Shown: positions 2 through 49,515 of the stretch, piece by piece
How positions within the stretch are numbered: the stretch's first letter is position 1
Layout: the number at the start of each line of letters is the position of its first letter
From: Pavona decussata
Taxonomy: Eukaryota
Length of the DNA: 64,000 nucleotides
Direction: 5' to 3'
Assembly: GCA_977016875.1 (NCBI GenBank)
Contig: CDRNST010000120.1
Span: 1,550,001-1,614,000, forward strand
Notes under the pieces: model-generated
Databases searched by the model: none
Told to the model about the DNA's origin: nothing
Seen by the model: only the letters and a program-made list of their open reading frames with translations
Program-made: the position numbers and the translations under genes

Positions 2-3000
2 GACTCTTTCGATGAGGACATCGCCAGACTCGTACAGCACATGCACGTACACCGTACAGCACAGGACACCTTCGAGAAAAACAAATGCGAGATTTGGATC
101 AATGGAACCAAAATAGAAGTTGAACCGGATACAGGCGCCGATGCAAACGTCATGGACGAACACCAGTTCAATGAATTGCTACGAGTAACGCCGGAGGTTA
201 AATTACGCAACACGAAGATCAAGCTGAAAACACTCACCGAAGATCTACCAGTTATTGGAGAATGCGACGTCACCTTAGAAAACAAAACGCGAAAAACACA
301 AGCGACAATCGCCGTTATTCAAGGAACAATCGATTCCCTACCGTTACTCGGAAGACAAACACTGGAAGAGCTGGGAATGATCCAATTTGACGCGACAGGA
401 GGACTGAAAGAACCAAATCGAGAAGAATTACAGAAGATCCACAAGATCCAAACCGGAAATGAAGATCTTAACAAGATTCTCTTTCAGCACGAAGAGAGAT
501 TTAGAGGCATTGGCAAAGCAAGAAGAGATGGACAAGACATCGAAATCCATTTACCACTTAAAGAAGATGCGAAACCGATCGCACAAAAGCCCCGCCGAGT
601 ACCATACCACCTAATGGAACCTCTACGTCACCGAATGGAAGAATTTGTCGAGAGAGACATCATGGAAAAGGTGCCAGAACATAACTCCATCACATGGTGC
701 TCACCACTGGTTGTCCAACCGAAACCAAAAAAACCCAACGACATCCGTGTCAGCCTTGACTTAAGAGTACTGAATAAGTCCATGGAGCGCACAAGACAAG
801 TACAAGCACCTATCACAGAGGACTTCATCACCACTTTCAAAGATTGCAAAGTCTTCAGTAAACTTGACATGAACCACGGATACCACCAGTTCTCACTAGA
901 CGAAGAATCAAGAAAACTCATGACATTCTCAAGTCCATGGGGTAACTATCGTTACAAGCGACTCGCGTTTGGAGGTGTCAACAGCCAAGATTTATTTGAT
1001 GCTGAAATGAGCAAGATTATCTCGGGAATACCAAGAGTCCTTAACAACCGAGACGATATCATGATTGGCGGAACCAACTGGGATGACCACAATGCCGACT
1101 TAGCAGCTTTACTTCAACGACTGAAGCTCCACAACCTTACCCTACGTAAGGAGAAGTGTGAATTTGGAAAATCAACCATCGACTTTCATGGGCACCTGTT
1201 CACTGCCGAAGGATTGAAGCCCAGTCCCAGTAAAGTCAAAGCTGTCAGCGAATGCAACCCACCGAAATCTAAAGAAGAGCTTGTGTCATTCTTGCAAATG
1301 ATGGCCTATCTATCACGTTACATCAGCAACTTTTCCAACCGCTGCGAACCGTTGAGAAGACTCACAAAGAAGGAACACAGCTTTGAATGGACCGAAGCTC
1401 AGCAAACTGCTTTCGAAGATCTGAAGACTGCAATTACTTCAGCACCAGTTCTCATCCCATACAAGCCAGGTCGAGAAACCATGGTCATATGCGATGGCAG
1501 CCCAACTGGCCTTGGAGGTGGCTTGTTCCAAAAGACTGAACATGGTTACCAACCAGTCCACTTTGTTAGCAGATCATTAACAGACACCGAGAAACGGTAC
1601 TCTCAAATAGAACGAGAAGCACTGGCTGCAGAGTTTACCACCACCAGGCTACACATGTATCTACTTGGAGCACAGCACTTTCAGTTAGCAACTGACCACA
1701 AACCGCTCCTCCCACTCTTCAATAATCCAACTGCAAAGCTACCACCAAGAATAGAGCGAATAGTGATGAAGATGCAGAACCTAGACTTCACTGCAGTACA
1801 TATACCGGGGAAATCCAATATGACTGACTACCTTTCCCGACACCCATTACCAGAGGTCCAGCAAACAAAACATGAAGGCTACGTCAAAGCAGTCATTGAC
1901 GCAGACCACGCGATAGTCATGGACACTATCCGATCAGCAAGTAAAGAAGACAAAGTGCTGCAGAAGTTGAAGATAGCACTTGAAACAGGGAAATGGAATA
2001 GAAACGATCCAGACCTGATACCATACTACGACGTAAGAGCAGACATTTACGAATCCGAAGGAGTCCTGCTGAGGCTCAACAGGATTATCCCACCAGAATC
2101 ACTGCGAGACAAGATTGTCAGCATTGCTCACAAACAGGGACACTTAGGCATTTCAAAAACAAAAGAACTTCTCAGACGGAAGTATTGGTTTCCCAACATG
2201 AACAAACGCATCGACGATATTGTTAGCACATGCTTCAGCTGCCAAGTGACCACCAACACTCAGCACACTGAACCCGCCAAGATGACGGAACTGCCAGAAC
2301 GACCGTGGAACACCGTCGAGGCAGACTTCTGTGGCCCATTTCCTAATGGCGAATATGTACTCGTTGTAACCGACCAGTACTCAAGATACCCAGAAGCAGA
2401 GTTCATCAGCTCAACATCTATCAAACCAGTCCGAAGAAAACTGAAGAAGATGTTCGCCACACATGGGGTACCACAGACAGTACAAACCGATAATGGACCG
2501 CCATTTAACTCAAAAGAGTTCCAGACACTTGCAACAGAAATGGGATTCAGTCACAAGAAGATCACACCCAAACATCCGAAAGCTCAAGGCCAAGTTGAAG
2601 GTTTTAACAAGCTCGTAAACAAGATAGCGACAATCGCAAAACAGGAAGGGATAGATGTACGCGAAGCAACCTACGACATGCTCCAAACATACAGGGATAC
2701 ACCACACCCAGCAACCAGGAAGACACCCTATGAGCTAATGATGAACAGAGAGATCCGAACGAAACTTGAACACTTCCCATCATCCATACCAACACAGGAT
2801 CAAGAAGTCAGAGTCAACGACCGAAACTACAAAGAACGAATCAAGCAATACCACGACAAGCGATACCGAGCGACGGAACTGCACCTAGACATCGGGCAAG
2901 CAGTCATCGTAAAGCGAGACAAGAAACGAAAAGCTGAGACGCCGTACGAACCGCACATATATGTCGTGACCCAGGTGAAGGGATCAACCATCATCGCCAA

Positions 3001-3283
3001 GAGGTTAACTGATGGCAAAAGTATCTGCCGAGACAAATCAAAATTCAGACGTCTCAAAAGCAATACCAGCAACACCGATTCCAACGAAAGGGAAACAGGA
3101 ACGCAACCTCAAACACAGATACCACCTGCATATCTCCCACAACCACCAGCAATAGCAGCACAGAGGGTGGATGCAGCTAGCAACGATGCAGAACATAACC
3201 AGGCCGCACCGGAACCACTCAGGCGATCCAACAGAAGGCCTAGATCAGTCTTCGAAGGACACTTAAGAGATTTTGAACAATGA
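2..3283 (+). CDS. Ty3/Gypsy (Mag-like) pol polyprotein PR-RT-RNaseH-IN; frame is open to the window edge
   Basis: Protease PDTGAD; RT LDMNHGYHQ, LAFGG and NRDD; RNase H CDGS, EREALA, TDHKPL; integrase HHCC (HKQGH...CFSC) and D,D,E (ADFCGP, TDNGPPF, VEGFN). Domain order PR-RT-RH-IN. No stop upstream of ATG 41. Confidence 0.97.
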   Translation, partial: DSFDEDIARLVQHMHVHRTAQDTFEKNKCEIWINGTKIEVEPDTGADANVMDEHQFNELLRVTPEVKLRNTKIKLKTLTEDLPVIGECDVTLENKTRKTQATIAVIQGTIDSLPLLGRQTLEELGMIQFDATGGLKEPNREELQKIHKIQTGNEDLNKILFQHEERFRGIGKARRDGQDIEIHLPLKEDAKPIAQKPRRVPYHLMEPLRHRMEEFVERDIMEKVPEHNSITWCSPLVVQPKPKKPNDIRVSLDLRVLNKSMERTRQVQAPITEDFITTFKDCKVFSKLDMNHGYHQFSLDEESRKLMTFSSPWGNYRYKRLAFGGVNSQDLFDAEMSKIISGIPRVLNNRDDIMIGGTNWDDHNADLAALLQRLKLHNLTLRKEKCEFGKSTIDFHGHLFTAEGLKPSPSKVKAVSECNPPKSKEELVSFLQMMAYLSRYISNFSNRCEPLRRLTKKEHSFEWTEAQQTAFEDLKTAITSAPVLIPYKPGRETMVICDGSPTGLGGGLFQKTEHGYQPVHFVSRSLTDTEKRYSQIEREALAAEFTTTRLHMYLLGAQHFQLATDHKPLLPLFNNPTAKLPPRIERIVMKMQNLDFTAVHIPGKSNMTDYLSRHPLPEVQQTKHEGYVKAVIDADHAIVMDTIRSASKEDKVLQKLKIALETGKWNRNDPDLIPYYDVRADIYESEGVLLRLNRIIPPESLRDKIVSIAHKQGHLGISKTKELLRRKYWFPNMNKRIDDIVSTCFSCQVTTNTQHTEPAKMTELPERPWNTVEADFCGPFPNGEYVLVVTDQYSRYPEAEFISSTSIKPVRRKLKKMFATHGVPQTVQTDNGPPFNSKEFQTLATEMGFSHKKITPKHPKAQGQVEGFNKLVNKIATIAKQEGIDVREATYDMLQTYRDTPHPATRKTPYELMMNREIRTKLEHFPSSIPTQDQEVRVNDRNYKERIKQYHDKRYRATELHLDIGQAVIVKRDKKRKAETPYEPHIYVVTQVKGSTIIAKRLTDGKSICRDKSKFRRLKSNTSNTDSNERETGTQPQTQIPPAYLPQPPAIAAQRVDAASNDAEHNQAAPEPLRRSNRRPRSVFEGHLRDFEQ

Positions 3284-3469: not shown

Positions 3470-3623
3470 TGTAGTAATATGATAGTGCATGATTATGCAA
3501 TACATGATACGTATCACATGATTACTGTAAGCAGAAAGCACATGGTATAATACAGTGAGTTAAACGGATGTCTGTGTCTTCACTCGTGTCTTCAATTATA
3601 TAAAGAACCCTTCGGTTACTACA
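3470..3623 (+). repeat. 3' LTR, 154 bp
   Basis: Begins TGTAGTAA right after the PPT and ends TTACTACA (perfect 8-bp terminal inverted repeat). LINE sequence resumes at 3624. Confidence 0.9.
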
Positions 3624-4315
3624 AATGTTAGAGTCATAATTGGCACACATTAAAATATGGGCTGCACGATTTTGGAGCTTCTGAAGCTTTTCAGAGAGAC
3701 CACTGCCACAGATGGCCCAGACAACACTACAGTAATTAAAATGTGGTTGAACTAGGCTGTCATATACATTAATTAATATGTTAAAAGGTATAAGATGTCT
3801 TATTCGCTTAATTGCGCCCAAAGCAGAAGCAATCCTTTTACAAATGTTCTGTATATGACATTCCCAGTTCATGTTTTGGTCGATGTGCACACCAAGAAAT
3901 TTCGTAGATGACACCTGCTTCACTGGATGGTCATTTATACTGAAAGAAGGAATTTCAGGAAATGTTGATAACTTCTGTCTCGACGCAACTAACATGAACT
4001 CAGTTTTTGTTAAATTTAAGGTCAGTTTATTGGCTGGTAGCCATGCATGTATACACCCTGCTTAAATCATAGTTAAGGTAGTCATCAATATGTTTTAAAT
4101 CTACTCCAGCGAAGGTGAGGCTGGTGTCATCTGCATACATTCTAGGTTGTGAAAAATACAGACAATTTGGCAGGTCATTAATATATAATAGGAAAAACAA
4201 GGGTCCTAGAATTGTTCCCTGGGGGACACCACATTTGACTAACTTTGGAGTAGACATAAAGGAGTTCATTAGACAAGTTTGAGTGCGATTGCTTAAATAT
4301 GACATAAACCATTTG
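3624..4315 (-). pseudogene. 5'-truncated non-LTR (CR1/L2-group) RT fragment, interrupted by the Gypsy element
   Basis: GVPQGTILGPLFFLLYIND, MYADDT, KFLGVHID, LQKLQNRAA. Frameshift near 4045. Reading stops at NYDSNI at the LTR junction. Confidence 0.92.
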
Positions 4316-7480: not shown

Positions 7481-10400
7481 TGGGAAGTGGAGAGGTTGGA
7501 CTGGAGGACAGCAAGGACAAGAAGAATCCCGATGACTTCAAACACACATGGCTTGGTTTAAATTTTAAAGCTGGGTTTACTTTAATTTTTTTAATACAAT
7601 TAACTTTTTCAAAGCTTTAGAAATTGAAATGAACTCTGACCCAGCCCGGGAGGTCTTTGAATGTGGGGTACAGCTGGCCCGGGGTTTTCCTCCTAGGAGC
7701 AAGTGGATGCACGGGGAGGTTTTTCACCCAGCTGTTGTTCCACAACCTCCATTCAGTTACGGCCATTGCTTTGGAACTTTTTTTTTTTCACTTTATGTCT
7801 TGATAGTTTTTCAGCCCATTACTATTTAACCAGCTACAAAGTTTTTTTTTCTCACATTCAGTTTATAATTTATCAAGCTGACCCACACCTTATCTGATTT
7901 TTGCATGTCTTCAAAATTTCGAGAATATATAAGATCTCAATTGAGTCATTTCTTCTTAGGAGCAATGGCTCAATGAAAGGAATTTTCTTCTTTTTTTTTG
8001 TCAGTAAAAACATCATCTTCTTTCTGTAGCAGGTTAGATAATACTAAGGAAACCCAAGCTTACCAACCATTCAAGGATGATACAGGGCATTACGCATACC
8101 TGATTTTGTTCCATAATTTAAATTTGAATTAACCACCTTTGGTGGATGTTTGGGCGTTCAATTTAGCAAAGAAAACATACAATTTCCAATCTTTACACAA
8201 TGTACTCAAATGCTGCTGCATTTGAGACTAAATTTTTTCATAACATGCAAACTTTAGCAGAAGCCAATTCTCTATTATTTTTTCAGTAATTTTTACTGGT
8301 TTGGTTGGCAAGTTTTTTAAGCCTTATCTTGTGAGTGTGCCACCATCAAGTATACAAATAAGTGTCCATTTTTGTTATAGTATAAAAGTTTTACAACTAA
8401 AAAATAGACATCCTTTTCTTTTTCCTTAAAAAGGGTATGGAAAATTACCATTATCCTACACAGCTTTCAACTAGACCAAGAGCATTGACCCTAGCTTCCT
8501 TTGAGGTTTTTCTTTTCCTACTATTAATACCCTTTAGCACAAATTTGCAGAAATATTCTTCAGAGGTATTCAGATCACATGAAACTTAACATCAAAATCA
8601 ACAGTCAGTTAACATTTTCCTTTTAAAACAAACAAACAGAAAAAAATCAGAAGTTAAAGTGCTAGAAATTATCTTTCACTTGAGATTTGTTTGAGGATTC
8701 AGCATGAAAGATTGCGGCAAAGAAAATTGGTCGATTAATTTTTCAACACAGAAGTGAGACACTTGTTTGTACCCATGCAGTTGGAGGAATAAGGTCACTG
8801 TTCAGACTGAATTTGTGCTGACATTCCAATATTAATTTTTTTTGGCGCCAAAATTCATTCTTATTGACCAGAAATTGTAAATTTACATGTGTGAATTATT
8901 TGCTTTGGAGAAAAAGGTTTTAAATTTGGAGCTTTTGCTTCTACTGCAGATTAGCTTCATCAGAAAAATGAGGTGTGAAAACACGTCGGCTTTTCATCTC
9001 TGATTTAACATAATGAGATGAAAAGCTGTGTTTTTACACTTCATTTCACTGATGAAGCTTCTGCCTCATTCTCTGAAGAAAAGAATGTACACACGTTCTG
9101 GTTCATTTATTTTACTGATGTAGAATGTTAAATGAAGATCCCGACAGCTGGCCTTCATTTTAATTCTTTTAATATGCTCAGAGATTTGCCAACATCCTAT
9201 TCCTCCAACTTCTGTGGTAAACTTGTTTTCAAAACAGTGATGGAACTGCTTAAAGGGATTTACATTTATCGGAACTTTTTGAACCTCTTAAAGAAAAATC
9301 TTTCATAATTTTTTGTGGCCAACTTGAATGAGTCTTAAACTTCACTGAAAAGCCAAACTGAAGTGCAAATTCTTCTGTTCAAAATCCAACTGATAGCCAA
9401 CAATTTTCATTGCGACAATTATTGTCATGACAACCAACAGAAAATAAAGAGGACAAGAAACCTTGAAACTCACCGATCACAAGCCTTTGACAAGGTCTTT
9501 TGAACTACAGAACAAAACTTTTAATTTATTCTGACTTCTAATTTATTGAGATCAAATTACATGCCAAACATAACTGTTGGTTGCAATTTTGAAGTTCAAA
9601 GTTTGCCTGTAAATGCTGTTATCATTCAAAATTAATGTAGATAGCAGTGTCCATCGCTGTTTTAAATTTACATTAAATTATGACCTACATATTTCAGTCA
9701 TGATCATGTTGAACAAAAATGTATTATGCATTAAGCATTTAAATAAATTAGGAAAGGAAATGAGTACTGACAGTACTCAGAAACAATGCAGCATTTGAAA
9801 TGGTAGTGACAATAATTCATTCTTTTTTGGCTCCACTTTGAAATGACATCTCATAACATATTAGACTACTCCACACTGATGTCAGATCAGTATTTTCATC
9901 CGATTTGTATATTCTAAGCATTACAATGACAAACAGACTATGCTGTCGTTTCCAGTAGAATACACTTAATGCTCAACATGATCATGATTGGGTAGTTTGA
10001 TAGCTGGTCTAAGTACTGTTTAACTCATTTCAAAACAAAGGAAGCAGGAACATATGCAAAAATGGAGCACTAAGTAACTATTTAATTTTCTTGGACACAT
10101 TATTCACGTTATTTTACAAATTTTCCTTTAGTTTTTATCACTTAAAAAATTTTTCTCTCCTCATAAGGGGCTTGCAGGGATAATTAAACAAATTAACCGG
10201 AAACAATTTTTTCCATAGGTAGACACAATCATTCTGCTTCCTTTGTTTTGTAGAACTCATGCTCATTGACACTGAAATTATTTTTAAGCTCGTGTAGGTG
10301 AAAGTTCTAGGAAGCAATGGTTTATTTTGGGTTTTTCATTAGACAGACGATATCTTTCAGCCACTTTACACAAATTATGCACAATATTGAAGATGAACTT

Positions 10401-13400
10401 TATAATGTTGGCCTTGGTCAAAAAATGGCACCTCGGCTAATCAAAGAAATCAACTTCAGCTGTTTCATATTATTATTTCTGGCTTTTCTCTGGAAAACCT
10501 GTAAGGATTTGTGGCTGAAGGATCTTTTCTAATTTTGTGTTGTCAATGAGCTTGATTTGTATCTATAACAATTAATTTTTATTGTTTTTTCTAAGCTTTA
10601 TTTATTTAGCAGGTAACACAAACTGGCGGCACACTCACAATCTAGCCAACCATCTCCCTGCCACTGGGTTGCGGAAACTCTGGCTCTGAGAAGGTCTGTG
10701 TTTCTGGCGTCCTCTACAATATTCCAACTGAGAATCCTGGAAGGTTTATTCTGATCGACTGATTTCTGAGGGGTGATGTGGACACTGGGAGATTCACTTT
10801 TGATTCACAAGAGGACATGACAACATGGAGGCAGGTGAGGGTTTGTTCCTTTGTCTTCTGGGTTTGATTCAGCTTTGGTTGGATACCACATTGCTAAGTT
10901 ATTGCGAGGGGAAGTTATTTTGGCCGAGATGCTTGTTTCACTTCCACTGTCATGGATGAAAAACGTAGGTGTTTAAGGGATGGGGCTATGGTTAGGCTAC
11001 TCTGATGGATGGTGATAGGGGGGGCATTAAGAGGCTGGGGACCCTGCACGCCCCTCTCTGTCGACTCACATGTAGCAATTCGGATTGAGCTGGAAGCCTT
11101 GTTGAGGGGATTCTTTGCTGTGTTGCTGCCTAATCAAGTTTTTCTGCACATTGAGCATTTTCTGCAGTCGCAAAATCCTTGCACTCCAAATTCTTAACTT
11201 CGAGCCAAAACATTTTCGTTTGTATAATGACCAAATTTTATGCCAAAAATTTATTGATCATTTCCTTAATTCGGATGAAAAATTATGAACTAAAATTTAC
11301 CAACCAAATTTTCTTTAATAATAAATAAAATAATAAATTGTTTGTCTCATAATGTAGTCACTTAAGTGGTAGAAGATTGTGATCTATAACTTAAGTAACA
11401 ACATCATGAGACAAACGATTGTTTATTTATTATTGTAACCCACTGATTAACAAAACACGTCACGTGGTAAAAAATTAGACAGTGTTTATCAGACAATAAC
11501 CACTGTCTGATTTTTTAGAAGAGAAAATCCAAAGAAAACATCACGGTTTTAGGTTTTAGAATTTTCAATCCAAACCAAAAACAATTAGTCAGCTAACGTT
11601 TATTTTCCTGCAGTCATGCTATGGCTAGCACTGGCTGTGTTTTTCTTTTTAAAGCGTACGTGTTTAAGGAATTAATGAGAGGATTATAGGATAAATAAAC
11701 CCCTTTCTGGTTTTCTGGTGTATTGATAATGCCCTCAGTTTAAAGATTGTCCTCAAAATGTCACAGTTGCCCCTGAAGCTTTGTTTCTGGGCCAACTGTT
11801 TACTTTTTTAGACAATCTTTCAGCCCTGGGCATTATATTTTAATTTTTTTAATATTCCCTAATATACCAGCTGCCTGATGGAGTTTATTTAGTAAAACTA
11901 TTATATTCTACCAACATGATCAAATTATTATCTTTTTCACAATTTTCCTATCTAAAACATCTTTCAGTTTTGCGGAAAATTTACATTTTGTCTCCAACAA
12001 TAATTCTTGTAGGAACACGATACTGTATTCATAAACCAATTTCTTGATGAATTTTGTTCAGATTCCAGGACCCCAGGTACACGATACATGAATCCTGCAC
12101 CTTTCAAGTGTTTGTGTTCATGTACAGTGTTTGGGCTGCCTGTGATCAGATGAAATTGACAGGGAAATGCACTATGACGTTATGTGACATATCAATTTAA
12201 AGAATTCAATTGGTCCTACCTTGGTTCTTTATTTTTCATTCCAAAAACAAAACAAAATGCTCATAGATGTACTGTTGTCTAATGATGTCACAGTTCAAAT
12301 CTCTTTCTCAAATCATTAACAATTCATGAAACAAAAGGAAATCATTACCGTGAAGGCGGTTTGGGAAATGTGATCTAAATTATCATAAATTTTTAGCAAA
12401 CTTTCTCTTTGAATTTCTCTAAGAATTATTGATGGTTTGAGAAGCTATGTCAAACACTCGAAAGACTTTCATCCGATTTCCAAACACCTCGAAGTTGGTC
12501 TAAAAAAAACTCGGCTTGGCCTCGTTTTTTCAAGCCACTTCTTGGGTTTGGAAATCGGATGAAACTCTTCCTTTGTTTGATATATGATTCCAAAAAATTG
12601 ATTTGCAATAAGTTAGGCTAGCCTAACTTTTCATTCTTTTAAAATAAATTGGCTAAGGAAATCGTAACAAGAAATTTCTTTACACGGCCCACACTAAATT
12701 ATGCATGCTTACAAATTTTGTTTACAAAAATGCATTCAAAAGCATGACAGCTTTCATAACGTTTTTTGACTTTGAATGCCCTTAACCGTTTCATAACCAC
12801 GAATTCTAGGTTCAAGAAACAAAAAAGACTTGAATTGAAAACAAAAAACTGTAAGTACCATACGGCCAACCATTTTGAATTCTTCGATTGCTTTTCATCA
12901 CCGCAACTTAGCATAATATTGCACGTGCTTTTATGTCATCCGAAGCTGTGTATAATTAATTCATTTCGCCATTTCGAAGTTCACTCTTAAAATTGTCAAA
13001 ATGCTGTTATTTGCCTTTTGTTTCACACTCAATGTTGAGACGACACTCAAATAAACCGAATATTACCGCAGGCTAGCGAACATCAAAATTTAACCAGAAA
13101 TTTAGGTCTGCTTTCTTTACAATTTAGCACTTTCACACATTAAAATTTTTTTCTGCTTGGATTTTGCGACTAAATGGCGGGATTAGGGGCGGCAAATTTT
13201 GCTTTTGGCAGCTTCATAGAAAGAACTACCCTCCACGAGACTTTATGGTGCTCTTTGATTTGCTGTATGACAAGGTGCGGCCGGGGAAATGGTAGACGGC
13301 ACGCTGAACCGGTCTCGTCCTCCTCCTCTTATGATGAAATGCCGACCTTGCTCTTGAACAGCGACGCTTATTTTTTTCATCCAAGACAGTGGAAGATCTA

Positions 13401-13896
13401 AAGCCAAACATTGAATTTGGGAAAAATTTTATTTTACCGAATAGCCAAATTATGAAACAAGCATATACCAACCACTTTGAAACTGATTGGCACTTAAACA
13501 AAAATTTAGGAATTGTGGTATCCAGGCAAAGTTGGATTGGACTGTAGAGGGCAGGGAAACAAACCCTCACCAGCCTCCATGTTGCCATGTCCACTTGCCG
13601 ATCATTAAGGAATCTCCCAGTGTCCACATCACCCCTTAGAAATTATGAGATCAGATAAAACTTGACAGGATTTCAAAGTTGGAATATTTAATGAGGACAA
13701 AAGAACACAGAACAACTTAGCCCAGAGTGGAAGCAACCCAAAAGGCAAGGGGGTGGGTGGCTAGATATTTTTTTTAATTCATTTTTTTTTTTTTTTACAA
13801 CTTTGTCATTGATAAACAAAATAAACCTTTTTTCACTGCAAACTTAGTGTGTGTTGTTTTTGTCTGCGACAATAATAGTGAACCAAGCAAAGTTAA

Positions 13897-14657
13897 GATT
13901 ACACTAAACCTTTTTGGCCATGTTGCGCGCAAAGACCCGTAAGTGCTTAGCTTTTAGAGTAAAGTGTCCAAAGCTATACATCATCAAAGCTTAAAGAATG
14001 ATCAAAAGTAAGAAATCAAACTTCTTTAACACAAAAACTGTACCCACTACAAGACCTTAAGTGCAAATTTACTGAGGGTTTTAAACATGAACTACCCACG
14101 CGACCACTTCACTCTACTGAACATCTAGTGGTTGCAAAATGTTTAGGAGGTATTGGCCTCTAAAACCGTGTCTGGGATTTTTTGAGTCTGCTTTTGTTTT
14201 GAATTTACAAGCTCAGACGCAAAAAAATGGCGGACAGAAATCACAAATCAAACTTCAAGTCACTTTTACTTTATTTTGAAAACAGCTGTCAAAAATACCT
14301 GACAGAGTTTTCAAAACAAAGTAAAAGCTACTTGAAGTTTGATTATTGATTTCTGACTGCCATTTTTTGCATTTGAAGTTATAATTTCAAAACTAAAACA
14401 AACTCCAAAAATCCCTGACATTGTTTTAGTGGCCAATACCTGCCACATCTTGCAATCACCGGATGTTCAAGTTAAGTGAAATGGTTGTGCAGTTAATTCA
14501 CATTTATATACCTCAATAAATTTGCACTTAAGGTCCTGTACTTACATTTCTCCATTCTTTTAGCTTTAAAATGATGTACAGCTTTGGATACTTTACTCTA
14601 AAGCTGAGCGCTTGCGGGTCTTTGTACGTAACACAGCCAAAAAGGTTTAGTATAACT
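13897..14657. mobile_element. Foldback MITE with TTAA target site (Kolobok/piggyBac-type TSD)
   Basis: Near end-to-end palindrome centred at ~14293. TTAA at 13893-13896 and 14658-14661. Confidence 0.85.
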
Positions 14658-14661
14658 TTAA

Positions 14662-18000: not shown

Positions 18001-21000
18001 GGTCAGGTTACAGCAGTTTTATTTTTCACATGCCCTTGTTTCCAAAAAACGTTAAAAATTAATGCCAACTCTAATGCATTGTTGTTGTATGCCATGCCCA
18101 TGCTGTTGCCATTCTATCATGCTCTTGGAACAACAAATCACCAGCTGTCCAGTTTCCAAAGCACATCTGTGTCCTTACTTTTCATTAAAAATTAAAAAAA
18201 AATTGGCTTATTGCTTCACCATATTTAAAAATATAGATATACATTTTTTAATTTTAATGGGTGCACCTAAATTAACTACTTTTGAGTAATTTTGATCTGA
18301 AAATCTTAAAAATTAATGGCCATGGATTGTAAGAGAGTAATGTTTGAAACTGGCATTGGAAAATTATTCATACTCTGGTCTGAAATTGGGTCAGGATTTG
18401 TAGAACAGGTGGACCGAACATCCCCTCCCCATCACCAAACATTGCGAGCAGTACCCCCCCCCCCTCCCCCGGAACTTCTCATTGTATCTTCCCTGCGAAA
18501 CCCCGCGAATATTCAAACTTGGCGCTTACAAAGTTAATTAAGACTTACCCTTAAAAAAAAGGTTACAACTTTCATGTAGGAGTCAATTTATCAAACTCTG
18601 TCGTTACGTAGAGCTTTGAACCCGTAAATGACACGTTATTTCAACTTTTAAGAAGACCTACCTTCGCGATGTTTTCCCGCTGAAGCTGAGTCAGGTTGCT
18701 TTCAAACACAATCTTAGAACTCCGCAAACACCTGAAAAACGGCAAATGTGGTTTCTTTATCACATTTTGAACGCGTCTAAAACTTAAACCAAAGTAATAA
18801 CGAAGTAAAAACGCAAAATTTTTCGACAAAAATACCTTCAAATTAGGAGATGTGAAAGCTTGCGGCCACGTTTGGTTTATGGGGCTGCAATGCCTTTTGG
18901 GTCAACAAAATTTAACACGTGATGACTCCACGTGGCAAACTCGTGACAAAACTCATTCCCAGGCCAAGTGAGTAGGCTTATTCAGGAGGCAATTATGGCT
19001 CCTGATTCAGATTTACCGATAGAATCGGTTCCTCTGCCAACAAATCTGTAAATTACTTTTTTCAAGCAGGTGGACCATCACTACCAGTCTGAGTTTTCTT
19101 GAGGCCATCGGAATGGGGGTAGGAGGGGAGGAAGAACCGGCCCAGAATCCTTTATGTGTGGCACTCGATAACAACACTCTGGGAGGTCATTGCATTGAAC
19201 ACCCTGCTAGCAGAGCCTTCTGGATTTTTTCAGATGGGGAGTCAAGAGAGGTTTTGATTACAGGGTGCAATGCAGTTTTATGTATAGACTTCTGGCCATT
19301 AATTCAAGGAATAAGACAGACAGCCAATCCGAACTGTCCTTACTAATAATTCCCTCTGATCCACTTTTCCCCCGCCCCTCCCCTCCCTTCCCCACGCCAG
19401 AGGAGAGAGCAGACCGCGTGAAATAATGTCGATAATGGTGACTTTGAAGATGAAGATCAGGTTACGCCAAAACGTGATAAACAGGCACTCCTTAATGGAG
19501 CCCCAACGACTCGCCATGGATTAAGCAACAAACAAGAATGTAACGAAAGAAGAAAAGTAAGTATGCCGTAATATTGTTTAGTTTCTATTTCTTTTTCAAC
19601 AAATTATAACATTTATCGAGTCTGCCAATGGCAATATTTACAATGTAGAATAAAACGTTTACTGTTTTCATTTGAAAGTTCTTTTTTATCTCTGTCCGAA
19701 AATGTTCTGAGTTTCTTTTAGCTACATATTTATAGTCTTTCGGGATTCACTGCGCATATAAATTACTCTAAGGTTATGTGAACGTTTTCTTTCACATATA
19801 TTAGTTATTTGTGTATTAATTAGCTTCCAATTTGTCGATAAATCTTGTGTTATTTGAGCCGAACACATTGCAAAAGTTCTCTGATTTTCTCAGAGGGAAG
19901 CGTTGCGAGTCCGAGCTTGAGGCTTGGCATGGTGAATGTTTAATAGCTGTAAGTTAAGGCTGTAAAGTAAAATTATCGAAAACGGAAGTACCAGGAGCAC
20001 TTTTGTGCCGTTAAATATTACCTATATTTCGCCGCTATTTTTAGCGCTCTACAAAGGTGGTTTTAAAGTGTCCGCTAGCATGCATCACAAAATGAATAGA
20101 TTTGAAAAATGTTTAGTAGTGGATAATAAACAAAAATAGTTGTTTATAGTGTAAATCAGCGTATGTTTTAGCTGATGCCTAAAAATTCTAAAACTTCAAT
20201 GTTCAATATTAAAAGTACGATAATATTTAGCTTTATTACTCTATTATTTTCACTCCTCGCTGCAAGCCTTAATATGTATTCACTTTCTTGTATTACATCT
20301 TTTTCTTTGTAGAAACTGAGTTCTTAGTCATTTTCAGTAATTTAACTTTTCAATTGGGGAAAACAACACCTCTGGAGACTTATCTTTAAAAAATACTTAC
20401 GGCTTCCTTTAGAAGGTGTTTCAGCTGTGAAATTGGAAAATGATACAGCCGATCTTTAATGAACGTTTGTTTTAGGCTCTTGCTCGTTCGCACCTTGAGG
20501 CCGAGCTTCGCATAACAACAACATAACAATTGGCTTAGCGAACCTCATTAAAATCCAACTTAACTCGCACACTTTAACATCTTTACAGTGTAAGTTCTGC
20601 GCTGCCAACTCAATCATTTTCAATTGAGTTTTTACTTAAACTAAAATCTGTTTCGACAGGATTTTAGTAAAACTTGGTTACTTTCAGGATTTGAATTACG
20701 CTATTGGAATTCAGCCATTCAGGTATCTTAGGTTTTTCAAATTTTTGCACGAACAAAGAAACCTTACCTAATTTGTTATTCCTTTCGCTATCCGGCTCAT
20801 CACAGCTGAGTACACCTACTTTTCGCATAACAATAATGTTTATTTTTTAGGAAAAACCAATTAACTTTAACGTTCAACATAAATAGAGCTGCTTTGTAAA
20901 CCATAATCAGTAGTACAAGAAGTAGATACTTGATCGCTTGATCCTGAGCTGTTAGAACTCTTATCGCTGAATAAAACAAGTGGGACATCACTCCTTGTGA

Positions 21001-21124: not shown

Positions 21125-22160
21125 CCACTTGCCTACGACACACTGTTACGCGGGTGATACTCAGTTATATCTTGCGTTTCAACCTAATGACAATGCTGTC
21201 CAAGACTCCGCAATGAAAGCAATGGAGGCGTGTTTACAGGACATTCTCAATTGGATGATTAGGGACAGACTCATGATCAATGATGACAGAACCGAATTCA
21301 TGATCATTGGTACGAAGGTGCAATTACGAAAGATCCACCAGAACAGCCTGATCGTGGGTGAATGTGAGGTGTTTCCCAGTGATGAAGCGATACGGAACTT
21401 AGGGGTGTGGATAGATAATTCTTTTACTTTGAGCGCTCATATCACAAAGATTTGCAAAGGCGCATTCTACCACCTACATAACATCAGGCGTATCAGAAAA
21501 AATTAAACAGGGACTCAACTGAGAAATTAATCCACGCATTTGTAACTAGCAGACTGGACGATTGTAATGGAATTTTATACGGACTACCTAGCAATTTAAT
21601 ATCTAAGCTACAGCATGTCCAAAATGCGGCGGCAAGATTACTATACCGTGCACCTCGGTATTGCCATATAACACCATTGCTACGTGAATTACATTGGCTT
21701 CCAGTGAGGTCCAGAATTGACTATAAGATTCAAGCAATCTATGGGACAGCTCCTAAGTATATATCGGATTTAGTAACTTTAAGACCCAATTCTGAATATA
21801 GTCTTAGATCTAATGACAAGTTTCTCCTATCGCCACCCATGATCAAGACCTCACCTACACTTGGCGATAGAACATTTATAGCTCTTCCTTATGGCGTCAG
21901 AAGCACGTCGAACTTTAGTACTTTTAAACAGAAGCTTAAAACCACACTTTTTATTCAAGCGTACGAATAAAGCTCTGATATATTTTATACACATACGTTA
22001 GGTTAGTTAGTTTAATTTATATGTAAATTCGGATTTGATTTTCCTATTGTTATTATTCATTAGTATTATATACAGTTCATATTTGTGAGGTGCATCTGAA
22101 AACTGTACAGTTGAATTTGCGCCATATAAAAATAAATATTATTATTATTATTATTATTAC
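21125..22160 (+). pseudogene. 5'-truncated L2-type LINE 3' end with (TTA)n tail
   Basis: HCYAGDTQLY (decayed YADD), RNLGVWID, LRELHWLPVRSRIDYK, frameshifts, then AATAAA and (ATT)n at ~22131-22160. Confidence 0.9.
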
Positions 22161-22720: not shown

Positions 22721-22940
22721 TTAAGGCTTCAGTAAGAAGTGAATATAATAGAGTAAAATAAGCTAAATATTATCATACTTCTAAAACTGAACATTGAAGT
22801 TTTAGAATTTCTAGGAATGAGCCAAAATTTTTATTTACAATTTGATCGCATTCGCGGGGTTTTCCCAGGGTGAAAAAGATCGTGCAGAAAACCTGGTAAC
22901 TAATTTGCAAAGACTAGGTTTTCCATGTCACAAATTCAAG

Positions 22941-25900
22941 ATGGCGGAGTTGAGGAAGCGAGGTGCGGGTAGTTCTTCCCCTTTCGTGCAAGACTGTGGA
23001 GGGAACACCTGTTGCCCTTCAGTAGCCTCAGACTCAAAGAAGAGAGGATCGTCAACCTGGATCTTCTTTTTGGTTTTGGTTTTCCTCATTTCTTCTCTCT
23101 TCATCAGCTTTAAAGCATCGCGCGCTTTACCCGCGCCCAAAACATCTGGCGGGAGTGCAACAAGCGATTTTGTGGAAGAAAGAGCAAGAAAGCACCTTGA
23201 AACAATCACATCTTTTGGTCCACGACCCGCTGGAAGCTACGCAAACGAAATTCAAGCAGTGAACTACATCACTGAAGCTTTGCAAAAAATCAAAGCCTCT
23301 GCGAGAGAAGATATCATCATTGAAATTGACATTCAAAAGCCATCTGGAAGTTTTGATCTGGGGTTTTTAGCGGGTTTCACGAGCATTTATCGCAAGATTA
23401 CAAATGTTCTCGTCAGAATATCGCCGAAAGACAGCTATCCGCCAAAAAATACAGTTCTTATGAACGGTCACTTTGACAGTGTCCCTGGCTCACCTGGAGC
23501 GAGCGATGATGCTGTGAGTTGCGCAGTCATGTTAGAAATCATAAGGTGCCTAGCCCAGACTAGGAACTTTAATTTTGTTCACGGGGTTGTGTTCAATTTT
23601 AATGGCGCAGAAGAGAATATTTTGCAAGCAAGTCATGGGTTTATCACGCAGCACAAATGGGTGGAAACTATAAGAGCCTTCGTGAATCTCGAAGCAGTTG
23701 GAGCAGGTACATTTCCAGCCTTTCGTTGCAATAATTATTGTATAATATGTATTCAAGAAGACTAGAAATTAAGTACTCAGTAAAAAATGAAGCCAGATGG
23801 GTCAGCAGTGTTGGCGCATGGCTCTCTTTAGCAGAAAGCAGCTGAGAGCATTGCAGTATACTTTCCCGGAAGGGGGGGGGGGGGGGTGGGGTACTCCCAT
23901 ATATTCGCTATATAGGTACGTGCCGTGGAATAGGTTATGGTTTTTGAGGTTCTCGGTCCTTACATAGGGTATCATTTTTTACCCTTTTGCTATGGTATTC
24001 CTGGTGTGGTCCTTAGATAGGGTAGCTAAATTGTATTATCTGATAATGGAGTGTGAGATTTTTTTAAAAAGGGTATCAGTTTTCGCCTTCGTAGTCCTTA
24101 AATAGGGTTAGGGTTCAAGAAACTTCGCGGCTCACCCCTACACAAAATTCCCTGGTATACTTTTCCCTGGACAAGTCCATGGGTGAGGTGAGGGAGGGGA
24201 AGAGGGAGATGGAAAATGACCATGGAAAATTCACTATCCTTATATTTTGTGGGGTCTAAAAATGGAGGGATGTCCATCCCTCCAGCATACAAGCCATATT
24301 GTGTCTCACGAGTATAGGGAAGGGGAGAGGGATGGAAGGAGTGAGATGGAGAAGGTGAGCTTTTAACAAAAGAATTATCAAATCTGGATCTACTGCATAC
24401 TAAATTGTCCGCTGGATATCTGCTCTCTGGACAAACGTGTCTGATTAAAGCCAAAACTTCAATGTGCTATACATTGTGCGTCTGTGACTCGATCAAGAAG
24501 TATTACATTCTTAATCTTAAAATTTGTTTCACATTTTTGGATTTTGTTTGATGTTCTGCTCAAATTTTAATAGGTGGAAAGGAGATAGTGTTTCAGACAG
24601 GCCCTGAGCATCCGTGGTTAGTAAAGACGTATTCTGAGGTAGTGCCACACCCTTGGGCACAGGTCTTTGGTCAAGATCTCTTTCAGAGTGGGCTCATTCC
24701 CGGTGACACTGACTTCAGGATCTATAGGGACTATGGTAAAATACCAGGTAAATTATTATTTAATTAATAATATCCTTAAAGGACTGTGTGTGTTATTGAC
24801 CTATAGTGCATGTGGTAGTTAATTCCTCCAAGAAGTAATATATCAAACACGAGAAAGCGTGTTTCATCAGATATCCAAACACAGAAGTAGGTTGAAAAAA
24901 TGAGGCGCAGCCGAGTTTTCTTAAACGACTTCAAATGTTTGGATATCTGATAAAACACACTTTCGAGTGTTTGATATGGCTTCTCAAATGAGCAATAATT
25001 CTTGGAGAAATTCAAGGCTAAAGTTGGGAAAATTTTATGGTAATTAGGATCGGTCATGGTAGTGATTTTCTTTGTTTTCTCTTCATGAATTATTAATGAG
25101 TTTGAGAAACATAGTTCCGATGTTTTATTTGCTGCTTTGCACTTCGTTTAGCGGGAACAACAGAAATGTTACCCATGATGATAGGTTTTCATTGCAGATG
25201 AAGCACAGAGCAAGGCATAAAACATTGGGGCAATGTTTCACTTATGGAATTAAAGGCGATATGCCAAAATCTGTTGAATCTGAGCTAAAACAAACAACAC
25301 TTTAGGTTGGTTATACACCAACCCCTTTAATTAATAATAATATTAAAGTTCAATGGAGGCCTTAAAGCTACATTGTACTGTTGGGGTAAAAAGTTATTAA
25401 AAATCCAAGCTTTCGCCGATCAACGGCATCATCAGCGGCGAAAGCTTGGAATTTTAATAACATTTTACCCGAACACTAGCTTAAGGCCTCACTTGAACTT
25501 TAATATTATTATTCTAAAATGCTGCTGAAGGTTACCTCCAATTAATACTGAAATAAGAAACAGGATGGGAAATTATTGCTCATTAACTAGTGTTCTCTTG
25601 AGTGATCATTTTCACTCCAAATGTAACATGAAATATACACACACTCACAGCTTTCAACCATGTTGCAGAAAGGTGACAGCATAAATTTTATCCTCACAGA
25701 CTAGAGAAAAGTCCTGCTCAGTGGCTTTAATTTGAATGATCACATTTTAAGATTCCATCCTTCTTGTAAGACTGAAAAGCTAGAAAGACCTTCAATGAAC
25801 TCTTTGTTACATGTATTTCTAGGAATGGATCTTGCATACACTGCCAATGGTTATGTATACCACACAAACTATGACACGCCTAGAGCTGTGACTGCGGGTT

Positions 25901-28900
25901 CCATCCAGCGAGCTGGAGACAACATTCTTGCACTTGTAAAGGGTATTGTGAACTCACCATTTCTGGCCAACCCTGGAGAGTATCGCCATGGTGCTATGGT
26001 ATTCTTCGACTTCCTTGGTGTATTTATGGTTTATTATCCAGAACGAATTGGTCTTGTGATAAATGTGGTGACTGTTTTCGTGGTATACCTTTGTGTCATC
26101 AAGAAATTTATTGGGTTTCCAGAAGGTAAGGCTGTTTTGGGGAGTATCCATTATTGGGGACACCCTGGCTTCGTCCACAGCCCCACTACCCTCATTGTTC
26201 TAACACATGCATACCAATTCTCCCTGATATAATAATAATAATGCTTTGTTTGTTTATAGTGGAAAATGCACTTAGCTACCCAAAGCTAGTTTACAGGCAT
26301 TCCACTCAGAAATAATGGGAAACAAATAACGGGAAACACTAGAGGTGAATCTCCCAGCAGTTTCCTGTACACTCCCAGGTGATATGACCAAATAAAACCT
26401 CACAGATAAAAGCCACTTTAAGCCCCTGTTACAAGTTGAATCTTTTAGCTGAAACTTTTGTGCAACGGCGAACGGGACCAATTTCATGAAGTGGTGTTAC
26501 ACGGTGAAACTCTTGTTTTTTCACCACTGCGACCGTTGAGAGCCGTTGCAGAAGTAGGAAGCGGTTCTACTTGCTGTGAAACTTGTCTTGCCGTTGCACA
26601 CAAGTTTCAGCGAACAGTTTCAATGTGTAGCGGCGGCTTTAGTCGTCAGTTTTTTGAAAACCCAGGAAATAGAGACTCTCGGAATCGTTCAGGGGAGTTG
26701 CTTTCAATTAGCAGTTGTCCAAATAATTATTATTATGTTAAGCCAGTGCTTTTTATTTTATTTTTTAGCACACTTCTCATCATCCTTGACTGATCTTTTC
26801 ACCTCTCTACTCACCCTTGTGTTATCGTGGCTGGTTGGTATAGCGTTTCCTGCAGTCTTGTCCTTACTTCTGACATACACAGGGCACTCACTTACTTGGT
26901 ATTGTCGGCCATACCTACTTGTGCCACTGTTTGGTGCCCCAGCTTTGTTTGGCATTGGATTTGTGCACTATATTGCAAGAAGGTCACTTGTGTCCAAGGT
27001 GTGTTGATGAAATACAGTATAATAAGGTAAACCATCTTTTATCCCCACCCCCCACCCTCCCCCACCCCTGCAAACAAAAAAGAAGAAACAAAATCAGAAA
27101 GACAAAAATCAAGAGACAGTCCAAGGCTGTTAGAAACCCTTTGCGACACTGTCCAGAAACCAAGCTACGGTAGTTAACCTTCATTTGACAGGTCCAGCTC
27201 ACTTTAGGATTTTATCCACAGAATCAAAAGTTAGAGCCACCTTGTACAGCATAATTAATTGCACCACAGCTAGGTACAAAAACTTATGGTTTGAACTCAT
27301 TTAACTTTTCGGCCACAAAGTACTGGAATTCCTTACCGGACAAGCTTAGAACTGCCTGACTGTGCCAAATGACTTCATGAGAGCAATATGACAATGTAAT
27401 TTTAATTGAAAAGTGGTTTTCTCAACCGATTAGAATGATTTTTGTATTTGAATCTTAATACGGACTTCATTTTCTTTAGGATAAAGTTTAGTTTTGTTTT
27501 TGGTTTAGTTTTATCTTTTCTCTCGAAGAAACTAGGCAGCTTATCTTAGCTATTTAAAAATTTGATTTGAAATAGAGGTTTATGCATGTATGTGTGCAAG
27601 TACTGGTCATGATCAACAGCTGGAATGGTTAATGGACTGTAAAGATTTATAAATGATTTCATCCACACTCTAAAGAGTCCAAATTTGTTAATTTGTTTAA
27701 ATATTAACTTAAGTCTTTATGTTTATTTTGCAGAGAAGATCTGTTCTAGAAAAGCAAGTAAAAGCATCAAGAGAAACAGAAACATTTTATGCTGCTTTAT
27801 TAGTTTGGACAATATTCTTGTCAATTTTAACTTTCAATCGCCTGGCTTTGGCACATGTTCCTCTGATTCTTGTGATCTTTCCATTAATAGTGAGAGTATT
27901 TGTATGGGAGAATTTCTTTACGACAAAGGCAGTTGATCAAAATCTGGGCAAATTTGTGTTCATGTACCTCCTTGCTACTATAATCCCTGTACAGTTCTGT
28001 ATACAATTGACAGTGGCAGTGTTTGATATATTTGTGCCAGTTATGAGCCGTGCTGGAAGCCGGATGCCTCCTGATGTCATCATGGCAGTGATGTGTGCTT
28101 TTGTGGTTGTGGTCATGACATCTTATCTGGTAAATAGATATCTAAACTAGTAATAATCAAAGATTACCGAGAGCATTTGATGATCTTGATTCCAGTCTCT
28201 TTAGCAATTTGGTGATGTCATCCACCCCTGCAAAAATCTGCAGGGGATGCTAGATATGCATCCCAAGGTCCATTCATTCAATCAACCTTGTCCCAGACAA
28301 TCTCAACTCCAATCTGTATTACGAGTGTGTTCTTTCTACGTCAAAGGCAACTACAGTACCACATGTGTGCATAATATTATTGCAGGGTTTTATCTCGGGG
28401 TGGGGTGGGAGGTATAATTTCTGTGGAATATTTGGTGGGGGTAACTGTGTCTCTTAAAATCTAATCAGGATAAGTCAAATGGACTCACGTGTGAGCTTAC
28501 GGCCGTTCTCTCAGCGCTTATATAAACATCCTTGAATTGCTTTTTGGATGACAGTTGTGGAAAGTTTTAAAACAAGAGCTGTCCTTATTCAAGCCCCACT
28601 ACATTGAGTGGATAAAGGCCCACCAAGTGACGTTCAGCTAATAATTTTCCTTTTTCTTTACTCTAGGTCAGTACATTGTACCTCATGGGGGACCTCAAAG
28701 TTCCAGCGGCATTTTTAGCCCTTGTCTCTATCCTTGCCCTTTTAATATCTCTCTCAGGGATTTCATTTCCTTATTCAGCTGCCAATCAGTGCCCTAAAAG
28801 GGTTTTCTTCCTGGTAAATATTTTAATTAATAATTTTAATATAGCAAAATGAGTACCTTTTGCAAGTGTGGAGGCTGCATGGGAGTATAATAGGAGCCAC

Positions 28901-49169: not shown

Positions 49170-49515
49170 AGTAGTACTTTCCTCTGGTGCTACTTATTAT
49201 GCTGTACAAGGTGGTTCTACCTTTTGAGTCTGTGGATGAAATCCTAAAGTATGACTATTCAAATGAAAGCTACTGAGCAGTATTTTCCTCTGGTGCTGCT
49301 TATTATGCTGTACAAGGTGGTTCTAACTTTTGAGTCTGTGGATGAAATCCTAAAGTGTGAAAGCTACTGAGCAGTACTTTTCTGTGGTACTGTTTATTCT
49401 GATGTACAAGATGTTTTTTTGGTCTGTCGATGAATCCCTAATAAATTATACGCCATTATTCTTAATTTTAACCATTCAAATAAAGTTTTGACCAGTACTT
49501 TTCGAGTGCTGTTTA
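49170..49515 (+). repeat. ~106-bp satellite, about 3 decayed units
   Basis: GTACTTTCCTCTGGTGCT..TTATTATGCTGTACAAGGTGGTTCTAAC..GAGTCTGTGGATGAAATCCTAAAGTG..GAAAGCTACTGAGCA. Confidence 0.9.

Follow-up and report, generated by a model that had tools for sequence, protein, structure and literature searches.

A long inverted repeat conserved in several coral lineages as a candidate long hairpin RNA gene

Most known long hairpin RNA loci come from flies and plants; there they are young and evolve fast, the rapid turnover of Drosophila hpRNAs being an example. To our knowledge, the long hairpin RNA loci of cnidarians have been reported only as existing. In Nematostella, small RNAs of heterogeneous character map to inverted repeats of up to 700 nt (PMC3975064), and clustered editing has been described in the repeats of corals (PMC5850803, PMC5625713). 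Hairpin RNAs with 18-21% G:U pairs still trigger RNAi, and in engineered plant G:U hairpin transgenes C-to-T changes, all placed in the sense arm, keep the RNA hairpin while breaking the DNA inverted repeat (PMC9263138).

The locus described here lies within a 64,000-nucleotide stretch of Pavona decussata DNA (hereafter the window, in which positions 47167-47301 are a run of N). The DNA is of a coral-like invertebrate type, and no human sequence turned up in it. The locus resembles the hpRNA endo-siRNA loci of Drosophila and Nematostella in being a one-strand inverted repeat with arms of hundreds of bases, in its imperfect duplex with G-U pairs, in its multiple loci per genome and in having a cnidarian precedent. 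It differs from them in being known here from DNA alone, in its very long loop (1.3-2.9 kb) and in arms that are 15-25% unpaired and have conserved purine-rich loops. It also differs in that no trans target was found: at the protein level and in one frame, a word search and a full HMMER search with the arm ORF matched only arm copies. Unlike the hpRNAs of Drosophila, the coral arms are conserved across deep lineages. As in the engineered G:U hairpins, wobble pairing preserves an RNA hairpin, but here the G-U pairs make up about 7-14% of columns and occur on both arms. The inverted repeats that serve as ADAR substrates, such as inverted Alu pairs, likewise form intramolecular duplexes of hundreds of base pairs between copies within a few kilobases. 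Those repeats are young, neutrally decaying and high-copy, whereas the coral pair is low-copy, old and constrained. The parts of the locus are the following.

7638-7757, + strand: ultra-conserved element of 118 nt, probably part of the locus, 2.9-4.0 kb upstream of the left arm
10598-10639, + strand: conserved leader just outside the helix base, with a run at 10606-10650 that is invariant in three species
10640-10972, + strand: outer homologous part of the left arm, pairing with 13364-13766 (z = 59 and 9.4 against shuffles) and containing the helix base (10640-10662), a GGAA/GGAA purine loop, the core (10769-10795) and a G-U-rich patch (10846-10882)
10973-11069, + strand: left-arm segment without a detectable partner, either a large internal loop or an insert (z = -0.3)
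11070-11197, + strand: inner homologous part of the left arm (z = 9.9 and 7.4 against shuffles)
11198-13139, + strand: spacer (loop), unconserved between lineages
13140-13267, + strand: inner homologous part of the right arm, pairing with 11070-11197
13268-13363, + strand: right-arm segment without a partner, CpG-rich and conserved, a candidate promoter in the earlier note
13364-13766, + strand: outer homologous part of the right arm, with about 57 additional bases near 13396-13452 and the partner of the core at 13610-13636

An earlier note on this DNA had described inverted arms that form a long helix around a spacer, and local alignment of 10640-11197 with the reverse complement of 13140-13766 bears this out. 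The alignment spans 535 columns in 30 blocks, of which 395 columns (74%) are Watson-Crick and a further 7% are G-U, and it gives arm lengths of about 560-630 bp. The perfect 27-bp core (10769-10795 with 13610-13636) is exact as described, and the outer segments that contain it (10640-10904 and 13499-13766) match in blastn at 75.6% identity (E = 3.5e-42), with a z of 59 against shuffles. The arms are homologous, but not throughout. Roughly 100 bp of the mid-arm (10973-11069 against 13268-13363) shows no homology detectable by alignment score against shuffles (z = -0.3), so the helix consists of two homologous stretches that flank a non-pairing insert. Co-folding of the outer arms yields -344 kcal/mol compared with -146 for shuffles, and the + strand co-fold beats that of the - strand by 50-75 kcal/mol in every copy and lineage. 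Two deletions, of 71 and 53 nt, set the left arm of the window apart from those of sister species; a three-species alignment places the first at about 11120, in the left inner arm, and the second at about 11217, just beyond it. The right outer arm contains both an invariant run (13669-13717) and a cluster of 5-6 window-specific changes (13598-13609) that disrupts pairing.

The arms gave no match in Rfam at gathering score or with E up to 1, their ORFs gave none in Pfam, and the spacer holds no ORF over 75 aa. Three small MITE-like palindromes in the spacer (11317-11434, 11726-11836 and 12446-12584) produced only sub-threshold miRNA-like matches to Rfam. Coding exons in the arms were rejected on the grounds that the ORFs starting with MDTGRF vary from 34 to 133 aa and shift frame after about 45 residues; the D right arms also carry a 2-nt deletion in the core. 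Deletions between species in the right inner and insert region (4 nt within 13268-13363 and 1 nt at about 13247) are frameshifting, so 13170-13370 is not coding. A remnant of the USP/UBA neighbour of an ERMP1 paralog was likewise rejected for lack of homology.

Read on the + strand, the whole helix has 38 G-U pairs (21 T-G and 17 G-T by arm orientation) against 13 A-C mismatches (binomial p = 6e-4), or 32 against 12 once the non-homologous mid-arm columns are omitted. The claimed asymmetry thus survives formal alignment and classification of the mismatches, and the G-U excess exceeds chance. Its local details were also close to what the earlier note had claimed. Between 10848-10882 and 13522-13557, where 12:1 had been reported, we count 11 G-U, 1 A-C and 2 purine-purine mismatches. 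In 10641-10768 the count is 6 G-U to 3 A-C (about 7:2 had been reported), and purine does mostly face purine there, with 17 purine-purine against 4 pyrimidine-pyrimidine mismatches. The excess is patchy, running at 7:6 in 10640-10839, 11:1 in 10840-10880 and 8:2 in 11080-11197. As evidence for RNA-level structure and for strand, the asymmetry holds in part: the excess is real, but the pairs of the G-U patch are mostly ancient and common to all copies, so they do not represent a set of independent events.

Mutational explanations of the excess were considered and rejected. A control palindrome of similar age only 130 bp away (13893-14661) has the reverse ratio, with 14 G-U to 27 A-C. Strand-biased mutation in the region is contradicted by this palindrome, by polarised substitutions in the surrounding 11.6 kb, which lean slightly to A-C on the + strand (275 vs 321), and by the polarised transitions within the arms, which are balanced at both paired (51 vs 46) and unpaired (48 vs 44) sites. 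CpG decay is symmetric by construction, and the patch is without CpGs. An ascertainment effect of slow paired sites alone explains only part of the excess: the control palindrome likewise has faster unpaired sites, but its paired sites evolve at 0.96 of the neutral rate compared with 0.54-0.59 in the arms.

The inverted pair recurs in two sister species (L001 and L004/L005), one of which has it at a further locus (L008). It also occurs in two coral lineages that are more distantly related (L009-L012 and L013-L014) and in metagenome contigs L063 and L066, and the inverted orientation of both arms is kept in at least three coral lineages. Across copies, left arms group with left arms and right arms with right arms, so the repeat is older than all of these splits. 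By this grouping, the arms are an ancient inverted duplication that predates the split of at least three coral lineages. The spacers of the D and E copies (1.3-2.9 kb) cannot be aligned to the spacer of the window. In the leader, alignment with the E copies begins at 10598 and with the D copies at 10624. Each genome or sample has two or more loci. The second loci look more like segmental paralogs than independent insertions, since their flanks are collinear (65-80% identity) and the 118-nt element again lies upstream; the duplicated unit of L008 corresponds to window positions 9619-13890 and extends past the repeat ends. No further arm copies were found in the window or in the ERMP1 paralog loci (L003, L006 and L007), and a metagenome scan with the 22-nt helix core returned zero matches.

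The 118-nt element is 92-94% identical among the window, D and E lineages, with sharp edges and unalignable flanks, and the longest invariant run of the three-species alignment falls within it. Among metagenome contigs, 55 carry its 27-nt core. In L066, L063, L022, L020 and L017 a left arm follows the element at a distance of 3.2-4.0 kb; the copies of the element in L031 and L036 have no hairpin close by and may represent another family. A structured RNA was rejected for this element based on a fold z-score of about 0 against shuffles and the absence of an Rfam match. The element is probably part of the hairpin locus.

Between lineages, alignable sequence is limited to the 118-nt element and the two arms, whose rate of evolution is 26-67% of that of the flanks. 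Among three species the arms have accumulated 82 substitutions where 121.9 are expected (p = 8e-5), and when 11.6 kb of the three-species alignment is ranked in windows of 100 columns, four of the five best conserved fall inside the arms. The left outer arm has 0.045 substitutions per site compared with 0.109 in the surrounding region, and the spacer, at 0.119, is at flank level. Orthologs of the D lineage are 2.1-2.3% diverged in the arms and 8.2-8.5% in the left flank and spacer (p = 1e-19), and E paralogs differ by 12% in the arms and 27-32% elsewhere. Mean column identity over nine copies reaches 89% in 10625-10905. The segment at 13268-13363 overlaps an invariant run (13266-13312) and evolves at a rate of 0.056-0.070. 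Purifying selection has acted on both arms from a time before at least three coral lineages diverged. Within the window lineage, slow evolution of the left outer arm (0.045) contrasts with a near-neutral rate in its pairing partner (0.099). Considered with the 124 nt lost and the pairing-breaking cluster, this contrast suggests that the hairpin copy in this window may be decaying.

How pairs change was followed over nine copies (W, S2, S3, S3b and the D and E copies). By parsimony, 62 events lead from Watson-Crick to G-U or back and 26 from Watson-Crick to A-C or back (p = 1.6e-4), with a further 9 double Watson-Crick changes. The ratio of G-U to A-C is 32-38:12-13 in the window group, 47-58:20-23 in the D group and 41:25 and 36:24 in the E copies. 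In each of these copies, whichever of the four mismatch classes is considered, the form that is stable in + strand RNA prevails (76:32 and 95:39 are two of the counts), and stable forms outnumber unstable ones by about 2:1 to 2.5:1, or by 1.5-1.8:1 in the two E copies. Separate deep branches show the asymmetry again (5:0 and 23:7); on the youngest ones it is weak, with 15 G-U vs 11 A-C among species of the window group and 6:6 on the E1/E2 terminal branches. All nine copies retain about ten G-U pairs, the GGAA/GGAA loop and further purine loops. Judged from these counts, selection has tolerated exchanges between Watson-Crick and G-U as well as U-U, G-A and G-G mismatches in the + strand RNA, and it has removed their mirror images, A-C, A-A, C-U and C-C.

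Compensatory change is less distinct. The window and D group differ by 16 compensatory pairs where global shuffles give 6.7, but under a local null with shuffles in blocks of 20-30 pairs the expectation rises to 12.8 +/- 2.5 and the covariation is not significant (p about 0.14). Where both sides of a pair have changed, 12 of 32 remain complementary, which is the chance level. The D lineage has 251 Watson-Crick pairs against 239 under the null (p about 0.006). The longest paired runs measure 34-36 bp in W, S2, S3, E1 and E2 and 30 bp in S3b; the D lineage, having lost the long perfect core, reaches only 19 bp.

Several of these observations would also suit arms that are conserved as DNA-level elements (enhancers, promoters or protein-binding modules duplicated in inverted orientation, for instance), with pairing as a by-product of common descent. 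Both arms are conserved as sequence, mismatch positions included; constraint in the window lineage falls on segments that are not each other's partners (left outer 10600-10850 and right inner 13200-13400); covariation is weak under the local null; and conservation reaches about 40 nt past the helix base. However, a function of duplex DNA is strandless and so predicts equal numbers of G-U and A-C toggles and equal mismatch classes, whereas the toggles and the stable mismatches both lean to one strand. Such a function also leaves unexplained why the arms stand inverted at 1.3-2.9 kb in every lineage, and we rate it unlikely, if still deserving of serious weight. Barely credible, by comparison, is a neutrally decaying inverted duplication in which the G-U excess arose by chance or from one local hypermutation patch. 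It is true that one third of the window excess sits in a single 40-nt patch (11:1), that the outermost 200 bp is balanced (7:6) and that the recent substitutions of the window group are unbiased (24 vs 28). Yet the arms are constrained in three independent comparisons and persist where spacer and flanks turn unalignable, the asymmetry appears on separate deep branches, and the control palindrome is neutral with the opposite lean.

Non-autonomous DNA transposons with long terminal inverted repeats and foldback elements likewise have long inverted arms (here about 600 bp) that enclose a variable, non-coding interior. A remnant or domesticated element of this type, with arm similarity maintained by transposition-level selection or by hairpin-templated repair of single-stranded DNA, would fit the two or more loci per genome or sample and the nested MITE-like palindromes of the spacer, and G-T is the best-tolerated mismatch in DNA hairpins too. 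We nevertheless find this origin quite improbable. The flanks at the sharp repeat ends, CACACTCACA before the left arm and ATTTTTTTT after the right, share nothing and hold no target-site duplication; neither a transposase-like ORF nor a Pfam match was found; the second loci resemble segmental paralogs, and the L008 unit is not delimited by the repeat ends. Orthologous copies have also remained constrained after insertion, unlike a dead transposon. The arms could otherwise be intronic complementary sequences of a pre-mRNA or lncRNA that loop out the spacer to control splicing or back-splicing, and such introns would leave an RNA-level signature identical to that of a hairpin RNA gene. CpG depletion over 4-20 kb suits a methylated, transcribed gene body, and a splice-donor-like CAG|GTGAGG lies within the most conserved part of the left arm. 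Against this, no exon was identified in 4-20 kb, the arm ORFs are interrupted by indels between copies, and the spacer is unconserved between lineages, so no conserved exon is there to be circularised. An intronic role is thus very unlikely.

We consider it moderately probable that the locus produces a + strand long hairpin RNA, and the nearest known counterparts are the inverted-repeat endo-siRNA loci. Ancient arms kept in several lineages, together with substitutions that favour pairing, make a long hairpin RNA gene the most likely identity, and we infer the + strand from the G-U excess and the fold energy. In this proposal, the locus would either be a long hairpin RNA gene in its own right or supply the hairpin of a longer non-coding transcript, read in both cases from the + strand. 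An inverted duplication left two arms, each about 600 bp long, on either side of a variable loop of 1.3-2.9 kb. The RNA would fold into an interrupted duplex of about 550 bp in which 75-85% of positions pair and the paired runs are 19-36 bp long. That duplex might be a Dicer substrate and yield endogenous siRNAs, a fate already reported for inverted repeats of up to 700 nt in cnidarians. Alternatively, the molecule might be a structured RNA that binds proteins through its conserved purine-rich internal loops. It counts against the proposal that duplexes with 15-25% mismatches make poor precursors of siRNAs. The 118-nt element about 3 kb upstream would probably belong to the same unit, perhaps close to its promoter or as a portion that is processed separately.

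More tentatively, the copies may make up a deeply conserved family of long-hairpin non-coding RNA genes in reef-building corals, with at least two loci per genome, each made up of the 118-nt element and, about 3 kb away from it, a hairpin whose arms are about 600 bp long. The loops and G-U pairs of such a family would have been kept since before a major lineage split, and its product could be a structured RNA or an siRNA precursor of a kind undescribed in cnidarians. If the proposal is true, this long-kept hairpin locus would be a testable candidate for endogenous RNAi or a structured lncRNA in an early-branching animal, with a signature of selection that is legible in DNA alone. The asymmetry between G-U and A-C, once checked against a neighbouring neutral palindrome and polarised substitutions, may serve to indicate the transcribed strand of such loci from DNA.

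The left arm of the inverted repeat (10640-11197) and the reverse complement of the right arm (13140-13766) align locally over 535 columns, 395 of which are Watson-Crick, and the outer 265 bp of the arms match by blastn with E=3.5e-42. In shuffle tests, 10640-10972 and 11070-11197 were homologous to the partner arm, and no homology above shuffles was found between 10973-11069 and 13268-13363. The check proposed in the earlier note was to align the arms and classify their mismatches, and the predicted + strand excess of G-U over A-C survives it, at 38:13 over the full helix and 32:12 once restricted to homologous columns. The asymmetry is uneven, running 7:6, 11:1, 4:3, and 8:2 in successive stretches. 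The perfect 27-bp core described in that note is exact on the alignment, and the G-U-rich patch at 10848-10882 keeps its asymmetry with a corrected count of 11 G-U to 1 A-C (given as 12:1). For 10641-10768, the reported ratio of about 7:2 with mostly purine-purine mismatches became 6:3, with 17 purine-purine mismatches counted.

The window has a G+C content of 33-46%. Its CpG observed/expected ratio varies as a mosaic, at 0.3-0.5 in the intervals 4-20 kb and 24-40 kb and ~0.9 in the rest. Together with the Gypsy pol ORF, the LINE fragments and the ERMP1-like gene, this composition identifies the DNA as that of an invertebrate animal and not as human. The window contains the following features around the repeat:

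41-3283 (+): seemingly intact Gypsy pol ORF (RT, RNase H, integrase); its CpG ratio is high
3522-4305 (-), 21129-21970 (+), 47628-48530 (-): among these, LINE RT fragments as well as an ORF encoding a GIY-YIG domain
7638-7757: 118-nt element, 92-94% identical across distant coral lineages
11317-11434, 11726-11836, 12446-12584: short MITE-like palindromes lying inside the spacer
13893-14661: foldback-like palindrome of ~770 bp directly to the right of the hairpin; shared by the three sister species and used as the control
20166-20272 / 22721-22827: 107-bp inverted pair, 86% identical, closely upstream of ERMP1 and enclosing a LINE reverse-transcriptase fragment
22842-34300 (+): ERMP1-like M28 peptidase gene
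47167-47301: run of N
49707-51108 (-), 55821-57411 (-): two tandem paralogous gene copies
54298-55044: tandem array of seven copies of a 106-nt unit
61619-61690 (+): tRNA gene, the sole Rfam match at gathering score within the window

The Gypsy ORF is probably young, given its high CpG ratio. Comparison with L003, L006, and L007, which carry the ERMP1 paralog and lack copies of the arms, identified the window gene as a lineage-specific paralog (~90% identity in first-exon protein sequence); the other copy stands head-to-head with a UBA/USP-like gene, likewise in one more distant species, and the window copy is without that neighbor. The tandem gene copies consist of very similar ORF pairs (234+137 aa and 276+142 aa), and the one copy tested had no Pfam match. 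The 106-nt unit is a dispersed repeat family, with single units at 27180-27277, 49174-49357, and 13455-13775 of L003. The MITE-like units gave only sub-threshold miRNA-like Rfam matches, and the third of them has a relative within the ERMP1 gene (24838-25109). The 107-bp pair has a + strand G-U:A-C ratio of 1:7.

A word search with a 133-aa ORF of the right arm led to a left arm, paralogous to the query, in a sister species, and contig look-ups yielded orthologous loci in two sister species (L001; L004 extended by L005). The three species differ pairwise by 7.9-8.8%, nearly as a star, and all three have the repeat. When this ORF was used in a full HMMER search, four further short ORFs emerged. 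They led to a second locus in a sister species (L008), to two loci, an ortholog and a fragment of one distant lineage, D (L009-L012), and to a pair of loci in lineage E (L013, L014). Five more copies came from metagenome contigs, two of them complete (L063, L066) and three partial. In all complete loci the arms are inverted around a 1.3-2.9 kb spacer, and left arms group with left arms and right with right in the arm tree, so the inverted duplication predates all these splits. Two hairpin loci were seen per genome or sample examined (L008; L009/L010; L013/L014; L063/L066), with collinear flanks of 65-80% identity that are far more diverged than the arms. The two loci of lineage D have left arms that are 99-100% identical and flanks at ~75%, which implies either that constraint is very strong or that the loci undergo gene conversion.

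Constraint on the arms is apparent in three comparisons. The three-species alignment has 82 arm substitutions, where composition-matched rates of the surrounding 9 kb predict 121.9 (p=8e-5), and the arms hold four of its five best-conserved 100-column windows. D-lineage orthologs diverge by 2.1-2.3% in the arms versus 8.2-8.5% in left flank and spacer (p=1e-19), and the two E paralogs by 12% versus 27-32%. In the 4-21 kb stretch of the window, only both arms and the 118-nt element can be aligned between lineages. This element has sharp edges that are not splice-like and unalignable flanks, and the left arm always follows 2.9-4.0 kb downstream. It has no Rfam match and folds no better than shuffles. 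Its 27-nt core occurs in 55 metagenome contigs, up to nine per sample, and some of these contigs (L031, L036) lack a hairpin within 5 kb.

Whether selection acts on pairing was assessed with a pairing map derived from the window and MAFFT alignments of the nine copies from the window group, D and E. Because the deep branches have no root, toggles were tallied without direction. Parsimony gave 62 Watson-Crick/G-U toggles versus 26 Watson-Crick/A-C toggles (p=1.6e-4) and nine double Watson-Crick changes. Every copy has more G-U than A-C on the same strand, and G-G, U-U, and G-A outnumber C-C, A-A, and C-U in each (summed mismatch classes, 76:32 for the window copy, 95:39 for D1a). Co-folding favors the + strand by 50-75 kcal/mol in all lineages. 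The GGAA/GGAA and other purine loops pointed out in the earlier note recur in nine of nine copies, as do about ten G-U pairs of its patch. Mutation bias does not account for the G-U excess: polarized arm transitions are balanced (51:46 in paired and 48:44 in unpaired columns), the surrounding region leans slightly the opposite way, and the control palindrome, 130 bp away and of similar age, has neutral rates at paired sites and the reverse + strand ratio (14 G-U to 27 A-C; 11 to 20 among recent changes).

Other measures argue against selection on pairing. Comparing D with the window group gives 16 compensatory double changes, more than the 6.7 expected under global shuffles but not significantly above the 12.8 under block shuffles preserving local rates (p ~0.14), where only the Watson-Crick count stays significant. 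Of 32 pairs changed on both sides, 12 are still complementary, about the expectation for independent transitions, and the youngest branches prefer G-U to A-C only weakly (15:11 in the window group, 6:6 in the E1 and E2 tips). The long perfect core is lost in D. The covariation evidence is only suggestive. In the window lineage the left outer arm evolves slowly (0.045 per site) and its pairing partner near neutrally (0.099). Relative to L001 and L005 the window misses 71 nt at 11120 and 53 nt at 11217, at or just past the left arm's inner end. A cluster of five to six window changes at 13598-13609 disrupts pairing; at these positions the sister species have kept the match to their left arm. The window copy of the hairpin may be relaxing.

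The arms are not coding: their ORFs shift frame from copy to copy, contain indels, and have no Pfam match. A plain transposon is at odds with the missing target-site duplication and transposase, with the collinear flanks and upstream element that second loci have in common, and with the constraint on orthologs. No described RNA family matched. Judged from sequence, the likeliest reading, which we favor somewhat beyond even chance, is that the repeat would give a long hairpin RNA from the + strand. Endo-siRNA loci of the inverted-repeat type have been reported in Nematostella (PMC3975064), and as experimental precedent, hairpins with ~20% G:U stay active, and G:U breaks up the repeat in the DNA (PMC9263138). 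The Nematostella loci and the hpRNAs of flies are the closest relatives of the putative coral hairpin, which is set apart by being deeply conserved, by its long loop, and by the conservation of its purine loops.
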